From assembly GCA_003427395.1 (NCBI GenBank), contig BFEA01000039.1, positions 1,852,779-1,916,778 of the forward strand: a stretch of 64,000 nucleotides of DNA, written 5' to 3'. The notes beneath the pieces were generated by a model that ran no database searches, was not told the origin of the DNA, and worked only from the letters and a program-made list of their open reading frames with translations. The position numbers and the translations under genes were made by a program. Of the stretch, positions 30,073 through 64,000 are shown one piece after another (position 1 is the first letter of the stretch; each line of letters opens with the position of its first letter). The DNA is from Chara braunii. Taxonomy: Eukaryota > Plantae > Charophyceae.

Positions 30073-32967
30073 ATAACTTTGAAAAAACGACGGAAAAAAA
30101 CGAGGAGAAGCAGTTTTTCTTTCCTATGATCCTATCTGATTTTATCATTTTAGTTTCTAAATAAGGAACTTGAAATTAACTTCACCTGACTGAGAGAGAG
30201 AGGGGAAAAAAAGATTAAAAAAAAATTGAGAGAGAGAGAGGGGGCAAAACTTCAAAAAAAAAAAAAAAAGAAAAAAAAAAAAAACTTAAGGCGGTGAGGC
30301 TGACTGGATTCAGACATCTGGTCCATATGTCAGGTCGGATATGTCAGGAAATCTGGGCAACTTGGAAAAATGATAAAAAAAAATAAAAAATCCAATTTAT
30401 GTTTCTGAAGAATCTGAACAGTTTTTCAGATCTTTTATTTGTCGATTTTGTGCATGTCAACTAGAGCACAAATATGAGCTTATTTCTGAAAAGTTGAAAA
30501 CAATGTCTTGACGGTCAAAGGGGGTTCCACTGGTTATAGACAGGGTTTAGAGGGGTTTTAAAGTTTTGAAAAAAGATTCAAAACATTTCCCTATGCCAGA
30601 TGCTGGCAGAAAATCCCCCTTCTCCTTTTGAGGGTAACCTGGGACAAAAACTTCTATGGAGCTCGGACCCGGCTTATTGTCGTTGCCATCACCCCCACTG
30701 CATGGAGACTTACAGGCCGAGGTTGCCGGTTCGATTCTCTGCGTTGTCATGGAGGGATTCAAGGTCGAAGGTACTTATCCGGATTCAGTACACAGTGTAC
30801 TCCCTGGCTACTGTACCAGGTTTCAGTTGATGTAGGCGGTCTTAGCCCCACCGTAGCGGGTTCGAGTCCTGGCTGGCTCGAATGAGTGCCCGCGATCAGA
30901 ATCTGCCATATTGGACTCCGGCGCATTTGCATCCCCGGCCGGGTACTCCATGGGGGGATGGTCGCAAGGCTGTGTAGGTGTTGTATGGGGGGTCTTGCCC
31001 GCTGAGCGTCCTGCTGGCTGTGCTTACAACATACACAGTTGTGGGGGGGAGGGTCGCTGAGGGACTGGGTACCATTGGGAGTCTCCCGCCTTGGAATGCC
31101 CCTTTACTCTGCCCTGGGTGTGTCGCGGGAGTGATTATAAAACTGGGCCCATCAGGGTAGGACCTGCCAACAGCTTAGCCTGCACGACCTTAAAAGAAGA
31201 ATAAGAAAAAGAATCAGGTGCTGGAAAGACAGAGTGTACTCTTGCTTGCCTGTAACAAGCAACGGGACTGACGGCCCCCAGAATAGGAGGGGCTTGTGTG
31301 TTGTCGGAGCGTCTGGAGACCGTGGCCTGAAGCAGTGACGTGTGTGCGAACAAGTGAGTTCCGGTTGGGTAGTGCAGCCATGCGGGGGCCGCTTGGATGT
31401 CAAAACTGGTATAGCCCCACTTTCCTACATGGCATCATATCGCCCAGTGGTAAAGATCCTCAGCTCTTAAACCACCAGTACTTGGCCCAGCTATCGATGC
31501 CGAGCCTGGAATGCCCCAATTTTCGCCGAAGCGCCGGGGTACCGTTTCGAAATGTTTTTGGCTGGCGCTTCCAGCCATTGTGGTCCGGTACCCCGAAGCC
31601 CTAAAGGCGCGGCGCGTTAACGGGAATGCGCCGCGGCTGATAGCTGGGGCAAGTACTGGTGGTTTAAACCACCACTGCATGGGAGGGCCTTTTCCTGAAA
31701 TACTGGGTGCTATAGGCCCAGATTTCCCCCTGCTGGACGGCCAGAAAGTGGTGTGGTACCTGGCCTCGTTAGGCTCAACTGGTCAGGTCTGGTGGCTTTC
31801 CCAGGCAATGTCGAGAACCGAAAATGCGCGACAATCCAGGTTCTTTGGATGAATACTGCTACTGAACAAAAATGGCTAGTGACGCCCGTCAAAAGAAAAA
31901 CAAAACGCCGCCCTGGCGGTTCTTCCTTTCGGGTGCGCAGGGGAAATCCGCCTTGGCAAAAAGAGGCTCAGATGTACTGGCGGTTTAAACCACCAGCACC
32001 TTTCCCAGCGATTTTTCAGAGATGCAGCTTTTTTTTGGGGCCGGATCGCGCCATGATGAATTTCATCGGTGGACGATGTCGCAATGAGGTGCCCGCGGCC
32101 GATGTGTGGGCGAGGTACTGGTGGTTTAAGGCTGTGGTCACTGGTTCGATCCCATGCATTGTCAGGGATGGATCTAAGCCTTCTATGGTAATGATCATTG
32201 TCCAGACTCCACAGTTTCATGGTTTTGCTGAGAAAATCTGCAAGTCACAAAGCGTGCACTCTCTGCTTACCATCTTGATTGTATCTATGGTTAGTCGCTT
32301 TTATAGTTTTATAATTTTATAATTTTTATTGGCATTTCTCTGTTACAACTTCTTTTTAAAACCACCAGTACCTCCGATCCTCTTTTTCCTGATGCAGGTT
32401 TGCACTGCGTGCCGAAGAAAAACGAACTGCGAGGGGTGTGTTTTCTTTTCTTTTTTGGCTGTCACCACCAGACATTCGGATCCGGTAGCACTGTTCATCT
32501 GAAGAATGCGTTGGTGGAATAATTTGTCACAAAAAGTTTGCCTGGGAGAGGTTCTGGTGGGTTTAATGCTTGTGGCAAGCTTTTAGGATTTTTTTTTGTT
32601 TTTTTGAGGTGATAACACTGATAACTTGTGATAAGTTGATAACGCAGTGAAGGCATACACACACTAGGACTATTTTAAAATTTAAATGTATCAGACCACA
32701 TTTACGGCTTTGACCAGTATGCATCTGGCCGCAATTCCGTCCAGAAATAAGAAAAAAAGTGCCAGTGTGAGTATAATAATGCCCTGATGCGGCATAAAAT
32801 GTCCAAAGCTGGCAACGCTCACAGCTAGGTGATGGTTTTAGGAAAGACGAAGGAAGACAAGATGGAAGGAAAATTGAGGGGGGGGGAGAGGGGGGAATTA
32901 AAAAAATAGTAAGTGTCGTTCTCACGTGAAGCACTTCCTGAAGTTCCTGTTGCTTTTTTCACTGCTG

Positions 32968-33001
<34 letters not shown>

Positions 33002-35199
33002 TTATAATCGGGCTTCCGCTCCTAAATGGCTATGGGTTGACTGAGACCTCACCAGTACTTACTGCAAGAAGAATTAATGCAAATGTAAGGACCCCCCCCC
33101 CCCCTCTCCTCTCCCCCCCACAAGTTCACATTCTCCTCTTCTTTTGTGTCACTTTTTTTTCTTTTTTTCTTTTTTTAGAAAGGTTAATTTTATTCCAAAG
33201 GCATATATGAGGCCGGGGACCTATCACTTTCTTTATTTCCCTTTCTATCCCTTTCTCAATTTCCTTTTTATCCTTTTCTTCACGAGTTTGGTCAACGTAA
33301 ACCATTTTCTGTAATAGACTAATTAGTAATTAGTAATTAGTAATTAGTAATTAGTAATTAGTAATTTGTAATTTGTAATTAGTAGTTTGTAATTCCAAAT
33401 CAAAACTTTCGTAAGGTGTCCTTCGGGACATCCGTTAAACAATTGGAAGGATACAGAGAAGAGTTGCACGGCCCCTTTGCAAGGATGACAGGATTGAAAA
33501 GAAGGAAAAAGAAAAAACTTTGACAAGGGGCATGCTAGCAGGCGGTCCTGATATACGATCTCTGTAAGGCTTCCATGGTCTGGGCTCATGCAATAACCAG
33601 GGATTGGCATTACAGCACTATTGGTTTCCTAGATGCGGAGGTTTGCATTGTTTCTACACCTTCAGCATCTTTCTCCTTTCCTGCAGCTTCTGCCCCCTCG
33701 TCCTCCATTCACACCTTTCCTCCCAAGCTTCCCTTCATCCTCCTTTCTATACTTTTTCGGAAGTTTTTCTTTTTCCTCGTCTTTCTTTGCTTATCCTTTT
33801 CCTACTTCTGCCCTTCCTTTGCCTCCTCCCCCGAGCTTTCTGCCTACCTTTTTCTCCGTTTTGCCTCCCATCCTTCCTCTATTATCCCTTCGCTTGTGCT
33901 CCTTCATCGCTTTCCCTCCTGCTTCCTCCTTTCTTTTCCTTGATCCCTCCCTCCCTCCCTGCCTCCCTCATTGTTCTCCTTTCCGTTCCCTTCCTACTTT
34001 TGCTTCCCTTTCCCTATGTTCTTCCCCTATATTCTCCCTCCCTCCACTTTCCTTCGCTCCCTTTTCTTTTTACTCTTACCTTACCTCTTTTCACTTTGCT
34101 GTCTTTCCTCCTCTCCTTCTCTCTTCCTCCTGTCTCTTATACACATCTAGATGTGTATAAGAGACAGACTTGTAACTCTGTTTGGCGCTGAACACTCATC
34201 AAACAGCACTAAAAGCTTTGACTATTGAGTTGAGCTTCCTGGTTCTCATTTATTTTCTATTGGGCTTTGTGTGAGACATTGCAATCTGTNNNNNNNNNNN
34301 NNNNNNNNNNNNNNNNNNNNNNNNNNNNNNNNNNNNNNNNNNNNNNNNNNNNNNNNNNNNNNNNNNNNNNNNNNNNNNNNNNNNNNNNNNNNNNNNNNNN
34401 NNNNNNNNNNNNNNNNNNNNNNNNNNNNNNNNNNNNNNNNNNNNNNNNNNNNNNNNNNNNNNNNNNNNNNNNNNNNNNNNNNNNNNNNNNNNNNNNNNNN
34501 NNNNNNNNNNNNNNNNNNNNNNNNNNNNNNNNNNNNNNNNNNNNNNNNNNNNNNNNNNNNNNNNNNNNNNNNNNNNNNNNNNNNNNNNNNNNNNNNNNNN
34601 NNNNNNNNNNNNNNNNNNNNNNNNNNNNNNNNNNNNNNNNNNNNNNNNNNNNNNNNNNNNNNNNNNNNNNNNNNNNNNNNNNNNNNNNNNNNNNNNNNNN
34701 NNNNNNNNNNNNNNNNNNNNNNNNNNNNNNNNNNNNNNNNNNNNNNNNNNNNNNNNNNNNNNNNNNNNNNNNNNNNNNNNNNNNNNNNNNNNNNNNNNNN
34801 NNNNNNNNNNNNNNNNNNNNNNNNNNNNNNNNNNNNNNNNNNNNNNNNNNNNNNNNNNNNNNNNNNNNNNNNNNNNNNNNNNNNNNNNNNNNNNNNNNNN
34901 NNNNNNNNNNNNNNNNNNNNNNNNNNNNNNNNNNNNNNNNNNNNNNNNNNNNNNNNNNNNNNNNNNNNNNNNNNNNNNNNNNNNNNNNNNNNNNNNNNNN
35001 NNNNNNNNNNNNNNNNNNNNNNNNNNNNNNNNNNNNNNNNNNNNNNNNNNNNNNNNNNNNNNNNNNNNNNNNNNNNNNNNNNNNNNNNNNNNNNNNNNNN
35101 NNNNNNNNNNNNNNNNNNNNNNNNNNNNNNNNNNNNNNNNNNNNNNNNNNNNNNNNNNNNNNNNNNNNNNNNNNNNNNNNNNNNNNNNNNNNNNNNNNN

Positions 35200-35285
<86 letters not shown>

Positions 35286-37005
35286 TACTCTGCCCTTTTC
35301 ATAGCGTGCAAGTGGGCTGTTATGGCAGATGGGAATGTGGGCAGCTCGTGCTCAACTACAACATCGACATGGCGGGCCGTGTGCATGAGGCGGACAGTAA
35401 ACACACATGCACACACAGACAACACACAACACAAAACACACACGCACACTGCCCCTTAACTCTGCCTCCTTTTCATAGCATGCAAGCGGGCTGTTATGGC
35501 ACATGGAGATGTGGGCAGCTAGTGGTCAACAACTACATCGACATGGCAGGCCTTGTACATGAGAGGGACAGTAAAGGGGGAGCTAAAAGGAGAAGAAGAA
35601 AAGAGAAACCGGAGAAACCGCGAAAAAAGATGAAGTAAGGAAGGAGAAGAAAGAACTGCACAGAAAAAGGCAAGCAACAGTTTTAGTGTGCTTCACATTG
35701 TTTGCTTTTTTTTTTTTTCTTCGTTTGACTCCTTTAGTGGATAGCCATGTGAGGTAAAGCTGTTTCAATTTTGGATCTACCTATCTGGGTGGAAAAGGGG
35801 TTGTTCTAGCAACAGTCTTCAACACACGCACACACAGCTTGTAGCTCTGTGACTATAAATGCAGCGACCAAAGGTACCACCCAGTGGCTAACAGCAACCT
35901 GCAGCTGAACCCCTCGAACGCATTTTCGCAGGTACGTAGTGCCATGCGCTGACAAAAGGAACCTCGGTATTCCGAGCGGCCCAGGGGCTTTACAACAAGT
36001 CCATCCGAAGTTTACTGTTCATCCGTTTTTGAATACGAGTACCGCGGGCCCGTTCGGCTCCAGGGCCGGTAGAGAGATGGATGAGCAGGCCGGTAGAGAG
36101 ATGGATGAACAGGCCGGTAGAGCAATGGATGAACAGTTCCTTCAGGCCCCAAAATGTCTGTGGGAACTGCAGACTTTTCAATAATAAAGAGGCCGGTACT
36201 GGTACCTTGTTGATTCTCCCACTGCCGATACTGGTCGCTTTTAGGCTCGGCAAAATGCATTTTTTGGTTCGTTATTTTGGCTTCGGATGGACTGGTGGTT
36301 TAAGGCTCTCACATGCATCCTCCGTAAATTGATCCGTTGATGGGTTGCTTGTGCGTCACCTTCTGCAGGCTTTGGGCTCGGTTGGGCCGCCAGTGCCGTT
36401 CACAGAAGTTAAGGTTGTCGACCCTGTTACTGGTGAGAGCATGCCAGATGGTGTGAAAGGTCTTGTGAAAGTCAAGGGACCTCAAGTCATGAAGGGCTAT
36501 TACAAGGTGGGCCCCAGCTTCTGCCCTGTGTTTTCCGCGTCAAATTTTAACAAGTAGATGTCCGTCCACTCCGGTAGCCGAAAACCCATGTGCAACTGCT
36601 TTTTTCTTGATGGTGCGTGTGTGTGCTATTTTTTGTCATCCTCGTCGTCATGCGCCTTTGAAAACTTGTGTCTCCACTGACCAAGTGCTCTGATTTCCTC
36701 TCCATGACTTTCCAGTTTGGATTTGTGTCCAATGATCTCACAATAACAGCAGACAGCTTGTTTCACGATAGTGGAAATGCATAGTAAAGTTAAATAAACA
36801 ATGGCCAAAAAAAAAAAGAACGTTGGCTATGATTGTATCGTCGGGTACAGCTCTCAGTTTCTGCAGTGTTTGGTGGTCGAGGGAAAAAAAAAAAAAAAAA
36901 AAAAAAAACAGTTTCTGCAGTGTTTGGTGGTTGAAACCCAAGGTGCTTGCCAGCCTTGCCTCCTGCCATGCCAGGTTCTTCCAATTTGCTTGGGCAAAAG
37001 AAAAG

Positions 37006-37139: not shown

Positions 37140-40100
37140 GTTGTGGGGGGGGGAAGGCAAGCCACACATGCGCACACACACACAAGTTACGACTGTGACA
37201 AATTTGCTTCTCTTACTTACTGCCACTGTTGTCAGGGGTCGTTTAGATCGACAGTTTCCCAGGATCGCAGGGTTGGTGTGAGTGGTGATTCCTTATCCAT
37301 TCATTTTACTGAAATGTTCCCTGGACAGAGGTTCAACCTCCTAATGAGTCAGTGAAAGTCTGACGAAATAGTCTGTTCGGCACAGGCACACTTTTTCTGT
37401 GAAGTTAGTTGTGTATAGCAAACATGAGAACACACACAAGTTTCTTCATTCCCATTAGCTCTGTGAATGTTTCAGCCTTTCAGGTCGGTGTACCATGACA
37501 TGATAGGGACCCGGGGTTATACAGCTCGAACTCGGAGTCCCTGGAATTCTGGTTCGTGGAGACTGGGAGTGCCTGGGAATCCCTGAGCTGTATAATTTTG
37601 AGTGCCAATGGCGTGGATGGTTCTTCTTTTCAAAGGCTAATTCTTTTAAGCCCAACCAAAAATTCAATCACCTGTCAAATCTGGACAGGAAAGCCTTCCA
37701 GGCCTTTTTTATTAACATTATAGAAGTACGAAACCCGGTAGCAGCCCCGACCGTGTTCAACCAGGGAACATGCGGGAGCTGCACCCACCAGTAGGTGCGA
37801 TACCTGCTTCAGCAGGTGGGCGATACCGGCCTGGGGTCAGCCGGTAGCATCAGAGACCGAGCTAATTCGATGGGCCAGTCACTCTGCCTCCCCCCTCTAG
37901 TCCCCTCTCCCTACGAACATCGGCAGTCAATGCCGCTCGGGGGAACCAATGGCCTATCTCTAGGTGGCGGGCACCAAGCTTGCCCCAGGAAGGTACGTGA
38001 GGCCAATTGGGACTGAACTCAAGAACTCCGGAATGCCGCTTGCGTGCCTTGCCAACTGAGCTAGGCCACTGGTTTAGCGTGGATGGTTCAAATATCCTCA
38101 AGTCTTCCTTTTTTTTTCTTTAATTTGGATCATTTCTCGATTTGTGTGTGTCATCATTACACAAGGGAGATGCTAATCTATCTTCTCTCTATCACTCCAA
38201 TTTTAAGGGATATTCCCAAGGACTACCTGCCAGATTTCGGAAAGCCTGTTAGATGAGAAATAGGGTGTGCACCAATGAGCATAGCTGGTACACCAATGAA
38301 CTGTTGGAATACAGACCCAAGCTCGGATCCAGAAGCAATCCAATGACCGGAATAAAATATTTTCTGAATTGCATGGGGCTGCTCTCAAGGCCAGATATGG
38401 TGTCAACGTAAAGTCAACAAGTGAGTGATAGAACAAACAAGGGAGTGTGTTTCTATATATATGGCCCTTGGGTGGGGGGTCTCTTTTTTTAATGTTGTGC
38501 GGACTCATTTTCAGAATCAATCAGCGGGGGTTTGTAACACATGCCAGTCGGGTGTGGTTTCTTTTTGGACGCAATGCGCAGAATCCAGCTGGGACGATTG
38601 CAATTATAGATGAGGATGGCTGGTTTGACACAGGGGATCTTGGCTGGATAAGCCCCAAGAGCAAGAACCTAGCTTCGAGAAACTGCGGAGGAATGCTTGT
38701 ACTGGAAGGAAGGGCCAAGGACACTATTGTCCTTTCCAGTGGTAATGTTACCTGTTCTATTCTTGTCGGTGGGGGGGTCATGAAACCGAAGTAATTGCAA
38801 TGTCACTTGGAGAATTACATCTCGCAGCATAAACCACATTGTAGCAGTGCAGCGATAACGCATGCATCATCAGACCGTCTCGCTCTGCTGCTCAGTATCC
38901 TGCTATGTCGTAATTAGTCACTGGTAACTTGGTAACTTAGTAAGTTACGGCCATATCATATAGAGTAATTAGCATACATGCAGCGCATGACGTGCGTGCA
39001 AGTTGCGCATGTGCACCGCCGCATTGCGCGCATACGTGATGCGGCGCAATTACGAATTACAAAAACAAAAAAAATCAAAAGGGCGCTGGCTGTGGTAACT
39101 AAATGTGTGCCTCCCTTTTGAAAATTGTAAGTGCACAGAAAGAAAAAAACAATTTGGGGCCACACCGTACTATATGCAGGGGGACCTTCTCATGGTACTT
39201 GGATTGTCTCGAGCTGTTGATTGATACTCCAGCAAGGTCTTTGTTTTTCTCCATCTTTTTTGGTGCCAATGGAATTGCTGTTTCGATCCTTTGAACTCCT
39301 CTTGGTTCTTTGGCTCGTTGATGGTGGTTGTGGTTTCAATCAGGCGGTCGCAGTATCAGAAATTTTGCGGGCGTTTTCTGCGATCAGTGCACCGCACTGC
39401 GCAGCGCACCTCACGTAAGCGCTGCAAGTATGGTAATTAGATATGTTACCAGAGTCACCCTGCCCGGGCTGTCTGGCCGGGCGACCCGGGCGAACTTGAA
39501 TTGGGGGGTGACCCGCCCGGGGTACCCGGGTGATAACAAAAAGGGGGTCAATTTTTTTCTTTTTCTTTTTGGCAGTGGGGCAATTTTGTCCCCACTGAGA
39601 GGTGCCCAAATCCAGCCTTATCTTTGAGTTTGGTGATATCTCACCGAAGGGTGTCTATGGGGTATAAGCGGGGTTCGAAAGGGCTCGGAGGGGCTTAATT
39701 CCATAGCGAATTTTGTGGCCACCCTCAGGCAAAAGATGTTTGGTTTGACCTGAACTTTGCCCGGACCTGTGCCGGCCCGGCCACTTGGGCCAATCTGGGG
39801 CAACCCGGGCCGCCCGATGGTAACACAGGTAATTAGTAGCTATTCACTTATTAGTAGTTGTTACTAAGTTATTAGCAGTTAGAAGTTCTAAGCTTTGGGC
39901 CAAGTGGTCCTCTTTTTTTTTCCGACCCGTCTCTTTCTTGGGCTCGTTGCGGGCTTGCTATGTTTGTGCCGATTTAGTGTGTGGTGTGCGCATTCTGCAG
40001 GGCGGGTGCACTTTGCTTGTAGAGGGTGAGGGTCCCCGCACTTTGTAGGTTTATCAGAAATGCTCCCTGCAGCAGCTGTTTAATGTTGTTCTTTTAAAAA

Positions 40101-62575: not shown

Positions 62576-63633
62576 CTGCCGTACAAACATCTGCTGCAGC
62601 GCCATTCAGGTACCTTATGTTGGTGGCCAAGAACTTGCAACGAGGTCCTGGTGAGAATTACAAAACCGGCGCTTCTCTCACGCTCAATCGTGCATCAACG
62701 GACTGAACACATTGAAAACTGGAAGAAAGATCGGCGGCGGAGCCTGTGAGCCTGTGAGGAGAGTGTGAAACCATAAGATCTTGAGTGGACGTCAGCTCGT
62801 CACAGCAGTTAGAAAGTAGCGGTAGAGAAATTGCACAATGCTGTCTCCATTAGCACGGACTCAGAACACTCGGACTGAGCACAATCTTAAATCTTACTTG
62901 CTGCAGGCGGGCTTCCAGGGCTTGCGACAAGTTCATGGGTTGGTTTCATGTCCTTATTTTTGCATGGTTTGCAGGTTCAGCATGGCAGTTTTTTGCACTT
63001 CTTTTAAGTTCTTTTTCTTTTTTTTTGCACTTTTTGTATCATACTCGCCAAGAATAGCGCACTCTCTGTAACCATGGAATGGATCGTTTTCTGGTGAGTC
63101 GTGGTGGGACTCTGTTCTGCAAATACTTTGACTTTTGCGCGAACATTGTATTTCAATTGTTATGTAATATATATGCAGTATGTACATCACGTCACTTTTA
63201 TTTTCATTTTTGGTTTTTGCAATTTTTGTTCTGCTTTTGTTTCCCCTTTTTTTCTGTTTTTTCGAATGCATCCATTTTCATTTTCTTAGTGCAGATATGT
63301 GTCCTAGTGTTGGTAGAGTTCTTTCAAACTGGATATCCTCCATGGCTGAGAGGGAGAGAGACTAAAAAGAGGGTCGGGAGGGGGGGGAGGGACGGCTGTG
63401 TTGAACTCTCCACCTTTCTTTTTGGCGGGGGGGGGGGGGGGGGTCAAGAAAAGGTGTTGCTCACGGGTTGTTTGTTTTCAACTTTTCAGTCCATTGGCTG
63501 TGAACTACTAACCAAATTTGGAAAAAATTGAAAATTAGGATTATGGTGTGGCAAAGTTGCAAACTATGTTACCAGAGTGGCCCGCAAGGCCGGGACCACT
63601 TGCCCGGGCAGGCCAAAAAAAAATGAAATATTC

Positions 63634-63947
63634 AGCCTCCTGATGAGTCGGTGAAACTCCGACGAAACAGTTTGTCACAGCCCCTTGTTGTCCTCTTCTC
63701 CCTCTCTGCCTACAGTTTACCGGGCAGTTCTATTTGACGATATATACTACGACTTCGCTAGCTTCCTGCTACGGTTTTCTCCGGTCAGGTCGAGTGGCAG
63801 TGGTCGGGGCCGTCACTACGCAGCCATGCTGTGCCTCTAGTGCCAGCGGCGTGTCTGGAGTGTTTTTTGGCTGTGACAGACCTTTCTTTGTTTCGTGGGT
63901 GTTTTGCTGGCTTGTGATGGGGTGTGAACCGACAGTCTGTAGAGTTT
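63634..63947 (+). ncRNA. Hammerhead ribozyme motif (type I-like)
   Basis: CTGATGA (63640-63646), stem II GTCGG/CCGAC, GAAA; stem III ACAGTTTGTC pairs with GACAGTCTGT (63931-63940), then A-GAG pairing with CTC. Confidence 0.65.
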
Positions 63948-64000
63948 TCCATCTGGTGTGGGTGAGTGATAGTCTACTTTGATTTTGGTTAAGGTGGATT

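Follow-up and report, generated by a model that had tools for sequence, protein, structure and literature searches.

The end of the window (by which we mean the whole 64,000-nt stretch of Chara braunii DNA that was analysed, from contig BFEA01000039.1) very probably holds two head-to-tail copies of an abundant, non-coding C. braunii retroelement of ~230-460 nt, Penelope-like and non-autonomous in its behaviour (Table 1). A sequence-only reading of this DNA had proposed a hammerhead-bearing mobile RNA element with a split ribozyme, whose core is closed by a stem III spanning about 250 nt. The mobile element is borne out by family copies in the window and in C. braunii scaffolds. The split ribozyme has to be given up, as the relatives close their hammerheads locally and the distal strand belongs to the arm of the next copy. 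For the locus itself the result is mainly corrective: there is no split hammerhead, and what lies there is a dead relic beside the antisense arm of its neighbour.

Table 1 Features of the two element copies at the end of the window
Feature	Positions	Strand	Content or basis
Copy 1 (= copy A), 5'-truncated fam2 element	63631..63746	+	3' two-thirds of ribozyme and tail
Stem I loop (UUCA) and stem I 3' strand (GCCUC); pairing 5' strand gone	63631..63639	+	Alignment with copies D, F, G and H
Core CUGAUGA, 5-bp stem II, 7-nt loop, then GAAA; intact	63640..63667	+	Rfam Hammerhead_3, 23.0 bits
Stem III 3' strand and conserved GUCACAG motif downstream; contains the local GUC	63668..63676	+	Family conservation
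Copy 1 tail, last bases gacgatatata = common 3' end of the family	63677..63746	+	
Copy 2 5' region (extension), head-to-tail onto copy 1	63747..63868	+	Junction recurs elsewhere
Copy 2 antisense arm against the whole hammerhead	63869..63944	+	Complementarity, duplex energies, inverted repeats I1 and I2
Copy 2 head hairpin, start only, cut by the window end	63945..64000	+	Match to L112

An intact core without a cleavage site

The core, stem II, the GAAA, the local GUC and the distal segment that had been described from the letters are all present where they had been placed. CUGAUGA occupies 63640-63646 and GAAA 63664-63667, and stem II (63647-63651 with 63659-63663) consists of five Watson-Crick pairs, closed by G10.1-C11.1. 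This 29-nt core with stem II (63640-63668) is unique in the window, where no match is expected by chance, and it is the best preserved in our sample of copies; the existence of these copies rules out a chance motif. Against the Rfam model RF00008 (Hammerhead_3) copy 1 scores 23.0 bits, well under the gathering score of 48.5 bits, and only the core and stem II are recognised. Exact matches to the 29-nt core/stem II/GAAAC pattern were also found in 107 metagenome contigs, which were left out of the family evidence; stem II of copy 1 and its loop appear to be widespread among environmental hammerheads.

The homology of copy 1 to complete copies begins at 63631, inside the stem I loop, which places the breakpoint at 63630/63631. 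Where copies D, F, G and H carry GAGG(G)-UUCA-(G/C)CCUC, copy 1 retains only the 3' strand GCCUC, and the distal GAG that had been offered as its partner gives 3 bp, short of a stem I of 4-6 bp. A stem III with A15.1-U16.1 and an NUH triplet at the family position are likewise absent. Having lost the cleavage triplet and the 5' strands of both stem I and stem III, copy 1 should be incapable of cutting itself; as its sequence reads, it is a dead hammerhead relic, in line with the earlier suspicion that this copy may be inactive. The local GUC (63674-63676) had been noted to give no stem I, and none was found; a minimal type I hammerhead on this triplet was rejected on that ground and because the GUC lies inside a conserved motif downstream of stem III, the family copies keeping CAGU(C/U)UGUCACAG at the stem III 3' strand and the motif that follows.

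On its 5' side, copy 1 is flanked by A-rich sequence that is unrelated to the family and is not (TA)n. The motif had been thought to interrupt a hAT-like end, for which no terminal inverted repeat partner was found, and the segment 63200-63640 did not recur in the 341 kb of Chara sequence compared. Scaffold comparison shows copy 1 to be 88-91% identical to L112:1597-1718, L116:2310-2188 and L115:32931-32818, and its gacgatatata end is the one that adjoins (TA)n at L112:1716 and L116:2190. Here the tail is joined to the extension of copy 2 instead, and the same junction (63746/63747) occurs at four other loci (L112:5038-5124, L116:2810-2631, L115:33326-33240 and L115:33353-33600). Positions 63943-64000 are 98% identical to L112:1491-1548, where a hammerhead follows 49 nt after the match. 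Copy 2 therefore runs past the window end, and judging from this relative its own hammerhead is predicted shortly beyond 64000. The microsatellite context of the locus is accordingly visible on one side only, as the A-rich 5' flank, the 3' end of the pair lying beyond the window.

The element family in Chara braunii

The family was surveyed in ten C. braunii scaffold pieces (L108-L117, 277 kb), reached via LINE proteins; the LINE ORF of the window had 27 reverse transcriptase relatives, all 27 of them C. braunii proteins. More than 20 further family pieces lie in these scaffolds, and the window itself contains two further ribozyme copies, B (37332-37376) and C (18884-18844, minus strand). Two subfamilies can be told apart. 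The first, fam1 (copies B, C, E and U1, the last at L108:1308-1716, 409 nt), ends in (CA)n, and the second, fam2 (copies A, D, F, G, H and I), has the gacgatatata end beside (TA)n. Copy H (L115:33283-32823, 461 nt) is a full-length fam2 element in which extension, antisense arm, head hairpin, hammerhead and tail follow one another; in front of it stands a 5'-truncated tail, and behind it a truncated copy that is inverted and near-perfect. On this pattern, a full-length element comprises a 5' extension, the arm, a head hairpin, a compact type III hammerhead and a tail of about 80 nt ending in gacgatatata; the family inserts into (TA)n, its sister family into (CA)n.

The search for family copies had been suggested as a check on the split ribozyme, with covariation expected in its stems. 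Copies were found, and stem II shows compensatory double changes in two of them, with A-U for G-C in copy B and C-G for U-A in U1b, but stem III proved to be local rather than distal. In six of the eight core-bearing copies, the sequence immediately 5' of the core supplies a stem III 5' strand (for a stem of 4-7 bp), a GUH triplet (GUA, GUC or GUU) and a hairpin of 4-5 bp for stem I, GAGG(G)-UUCA(A)-(C)CCUC. The CUC for which the distal GAG had been proposed as partner belongs to the 3' strand of this local stem I. The Hammerhead_3 alignment of the copy H hammerhead (L115:32944-32889) spans it end to end and scores 45.5 bits (E 4.8e-8), itself below the gathering score. Judged by these pairings, the family ribozyme is a compact type III hammerhead.

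Several further observations concern the surroundings of individual copies. Copy C (window 18884-18665, minus strand) begins exactly at the core, after (CA)n, and its tail is fused to a retrocopy of U2 snRNA (18789-18665, 43.9 bits), after which comes an A-rich tract; the fusion looks like a template-switch chimera. In copy D (L110:520-129, minus strand) the tail is followed directly by a fragment of bacterial-type (organellar) LSU rRNA (L110:301-129, 57.4 bits); here too, in a second chimera, the element is joined to an abundant RNA of another kind. Between 10260 and 60004 the window also holds five copies of U6 and one of U2, two SSU rRNA fragments (one eukaryotic, the other bacterial-type) and a group II intron domain, which suggests heavy retrocopying of small RNAs and of organellar RNA or DNA. 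Downstream of copy B, a short segment at 37505-37600 has inverted ends (ggttatacagctc ... gagctgtataa) and looks like a small MITE insertion. On scaffold L115, a nest of at least ten fam2 pieces occupies 32300-35500. The hammerhead of copy H and the perfect inverted copy adjacent to it form a hairpin that scores with two models of plant miRNA precursors, MIR839 (47 bits) and mir-1460 (42.5 bits), both below threshold, and it is a possible source of small RNA. Runs of N that mark assembly gaps start inside the long fam2 extension at L112:5125 onward and at L116:2630-2311; at these two places the assembly may have been interrupted by the element or by its hairpin.

The distal strand is one end of an antisense arm

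The long-range pairing itself is as it had been described. Positions 63667-63676 pair with 63931-63940 at nine of ten positions, with one G.U pair and one U.U mismatch, a GUA stands at 63939-63941, and the GAG at 63942-63944 can pair with the CUC at 63637-63639. If these pairs made a ribozyme, the core at 63640 would be completed in cis by a strand about 255 nt away, giving a split or discontinuous hammerhead cut at the GUA, after 63941. The pairs follow hammerhead rules in having A15.1-U16.1, an NUH triplet and the 9/10 stem III, an equally good distal site arose in only 309 of 20,000 dinucleotide shuffles of the downstream sequence (p about 0.015), and the string ACRGUCUGUARAG at the arm end is also present in two other long copies, H and I. 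We nevertheless regard such a ribozyme as extremely improbable. Its stem I is limited to the 3 bp given above, the family hammerhead is closed locally, and the equivalent segment of the sister family (CUGCUAGG) has no NUH in register. The predicted folds also speak against it: the minimum-energy fold of 63626-63965 (-128.8 kcal/mol, z -3.7) is a long rod in which 63632-63686 pair with 63868-63926, and the forced split-hammerhead fold (-97.5 kcal/mol) lies 31 kcal/mol above it, with an ensemble probability of 0.0 for each proposed pair.

Moreover, the distal segment is accounted for in another way. The stretch at 63869-63944 is complementary to the whole hammerhead, including the 5' half that is missing from copy 1, and two segments that had been noticed separately are its opposite ends: the supposed stem III partner (63931-63940), and the complement GGCUGUGAC at 63869, which had been thought to act as a switch and does compete with the ribozyme fold through the rod just described. 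The long-range complementarity is seen because the arm of copy 2 can pair with any family hammerhead, copy 1 included. The end of the arm, GACAGUCUGUA-GAG, is antisense to the hammerhead flank and the stem III 5' strand (CUCUGCAGACUGU...). Since this flank is quasi-palindromic, its antisense resembles the sense cleavage site and pairs imperfectly with the stem III 3' strand, and the GUA at the arm end can be derived from an antisense GCA via a single C-to-U change. An arm end that is antisense to a quasi-palindromic flank thus explains a distal site beyond chance that is not a stem III. Two other assignments within the arm were considered and set aside. Positions 63871-63892 resemble the start of a second sense tail (E 0.006), a likeness that comes from the palindromic CUGUGACAG, the segment being the start of the arm. 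Positions 63929-63944 share the 8-mer CUGUAGAG with copy D and could be taken for the relic 5' half of a hammerhead; antisense to the quasi-palindromic flank is the preferred reading.

Duplex energies describe the extent of the complementarity. With the complete hammerheads of copies F and D the arm forms duplexes of -84.5 and -86.2 kcal/mol (z about -9), and with the truncated hammerhead of copy A one of -66.3 kcal/mol. The manner in which the arm has diverged points to RNA. Compared with the reverse complement of the copy H hammerhead, the copy 2 arm has 52 Watson-Crick positions, 16 transitions that keep the pair as a wobble, no transition that breaks it, and 4 transversions. The corresponding counts of wobble-keeping and pair-breaking transitions are 15 and 0 for the copy 2 arm against the copy F hammerhead, 15 and 2 for the copy H arm against its own hammerhead, and 13 and 3 for the fam1 U1 arm against its own, all drawn from few, related copies. 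The recent inverted copy beside H, unlike the arms, is a near-perfect complement. Purifying selection on pairing in the plus-strand RNA would be the simplest reading of this wobble bias; the alternative is strand-specific deamination as the cause of the arm's wobble-only divergence. The 16:0 ratio of wobble-keeping to pair-breaking changes is a clean, quantifiable sign, at the level of the family, that complementarity of the arm is maintained in RNA. Read as its reverse complement, the arm shows a ruined core and so is not a minus-polarity ribozyme.

Proposed masking of the ribozyme and possible origin of copy 1

When element H is folded in full, a single rod of about 320 nt (-186.4 kcal/mol, z -4.8) is predicted to take up its arm, its head and its own ribozyme. 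For U1 of the sister family, the minimum-energy fold takes local hairpins rather than an arm-ribozyme rod. We propose a model in which the element RNA folds arm, head and hammerhead together into a long imperfect rod that masks the ribozyme. Cleavage would then be confined to moments when no arm is available, for example when the hammerhead of an upstream tandem copy has been transcribed before the arm. Masking would keep the 3' tail, which would be required for reverse transcription, attached to the full-length transcript. At the present locus, copy 1 is truncated at a point 5 nt beyond the cut site predicted for the family, and copy 2 is a longer copy whose arm is able to pair with any family hammerhead.

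A stronger version of this model takes the arm to be a selected, built-in switch, with the type III hammerhead held in a viroid-like rod so that only the upstream ribozyme of a tandem cuts. We put this forward tentatively, as possible rather than probable. If it is true, this streptophyte alga would harbour a structural intermediate that stands between the ribozymes of Penelope elements and the rod-shaped RNAs of land-plant retrozymes and viroids.

The position of the breakpoint raises a second question, namely whether copy 1 is a DNA copy of the 3' self-cleavage product minus a few 5' nucleotides, in which case the locus would record ribozyme activity in vivo. The breakpoint corresponds to position 353 of copy H and so lies 5 nt beyond 347/348, where the cut is predicted; the starts of two other copies fall at H positions 354 and 355 (L115:33357 and L115:46480). 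However, G1.1 itself is the first base of none of the three, there are further clusters of 5' ends at H positions 377, 384-391 and 410-415, and reverse transcriptase stalling at a stable structure, or microhomology, explains clustering in this small sample of 5' ends equally well. We therefore consider this origin unlikely.

Comparison with known systems

Insertion anatomy suggests how the family moves. At least 16 copies share the tail and differ in 5' truncation, their 5' ends ranging from H position 353 to about 415. The partial tandem (pLTR) arrangement is found in copy A, at L112:5038 and L116:2810, and in copies H and I on L115. Relatives also have adjacent inverted 5'-truncated copies (L115:32822-32774 beside H, and L112:21526-21772), of which none was seen at the copy A locus, and they sit in (TA)n or (CA)n microsatellite targets. 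According to Craig et al. 2021 (PMC8557442), 5' truncation, partial tandems, inverted truncated neighbours and microsatellite insertion are hallmarks of Penelope-like elements, including the Chlamys elements, which in C. braunii carry canonical hammerheads. On this evidence, we infer Penelope-type mobilisation of the family. Compared by description, Chlamys-2_cBra and the endonuclease-less PLE-X of that study share with our elements the host, the placing of a canonical hammerhead close to the 3' end, a high frequency of 5' truncation, pLTR, inverted truncated neighbours and (CA)n-type targets. They differ in that the published elements encode a reverse transcriptase, with or without a gag-like ORF, whereas the copies described here are 0.2-0.5 kb long and have no ORF. 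This analysis linked neither a reverse transcriptase nor a GIY-YIG gene to the family; look-ups of ORFs around the locus by exact protein sequence gave no records, and a 111-aa open frame across the locus had no matches in a word search. The main text of PMC8557442 makes no mention of an antisense arm or of a (TA)n-targeting subfamily, and we found no published description of a short non-coding family of this kind or of its arm.

Plant retrozymes and the hammerhead viroids and satellites (Cervera et al. 2016, PMC4918200; de la Pena and Cervera 2017, PMC5680766) are also small non-coding RNAs with a type III hammerhead, and they too are predicted to form a highly paired rod whose most stable fold sequesters the ribozyme. 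The locus could on this comparison be a retrozyme-like unit, in which two hammerhead-bearing direct repeats on either side of an internal region release a circular RNA of ~420 nt. The order of hammerhead and tail, internal region, and again hammerhead and tail does resemble retrozyme LTRs, rod-like RNA is predicted for the copy A region as well as for element H, and algal tandem hammerheads resembling retrozymes have been mentioned (PMC5680766). We judge such a unit improbable, given that the upstream repeat is truncated differently at each locus and often has no ribozyme, as in a Penelope-type partial tandem and not as in an LTR, and that the upstream ribozyme at the copy A locus has no cleavage site. 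The masking strand differs as well, being a dedicated arm without a ribozyme of opposite polarity.

The metazoan Penelope-like hammerheads (Cervera and de la Pena 2014, PMC4209133) offer the remaining comparison. They are minimal type I ribozymes with a helix III of 1-2 bp and act as dimers. In both systems the ribozyme lies in Penelope-type terminal repeats and its activity may depend on the tandem arrangement, whereas the Chara ribozyme is of type III, its stem I being closed as a hairpin and its stem III measuring 4-7 bp. Copy 1 is an ordinary dead member of its family, and the family a variant of known ribozyme-bearing retroelements. With the asymmetry of its arm, this retroelement of a streptophyte alga offers a case in which ribozyme masking can be tested, a case that bears on the kinship of ribozyme-bearing retroelements with retrozymes and viroid-like RNAs. 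What is unusual is that a non-coding derivative combines a ribozyme of type III with a dedicated antisense arm, given that the published hammerheads of Penelope elements are described as type I (PMC4209133).
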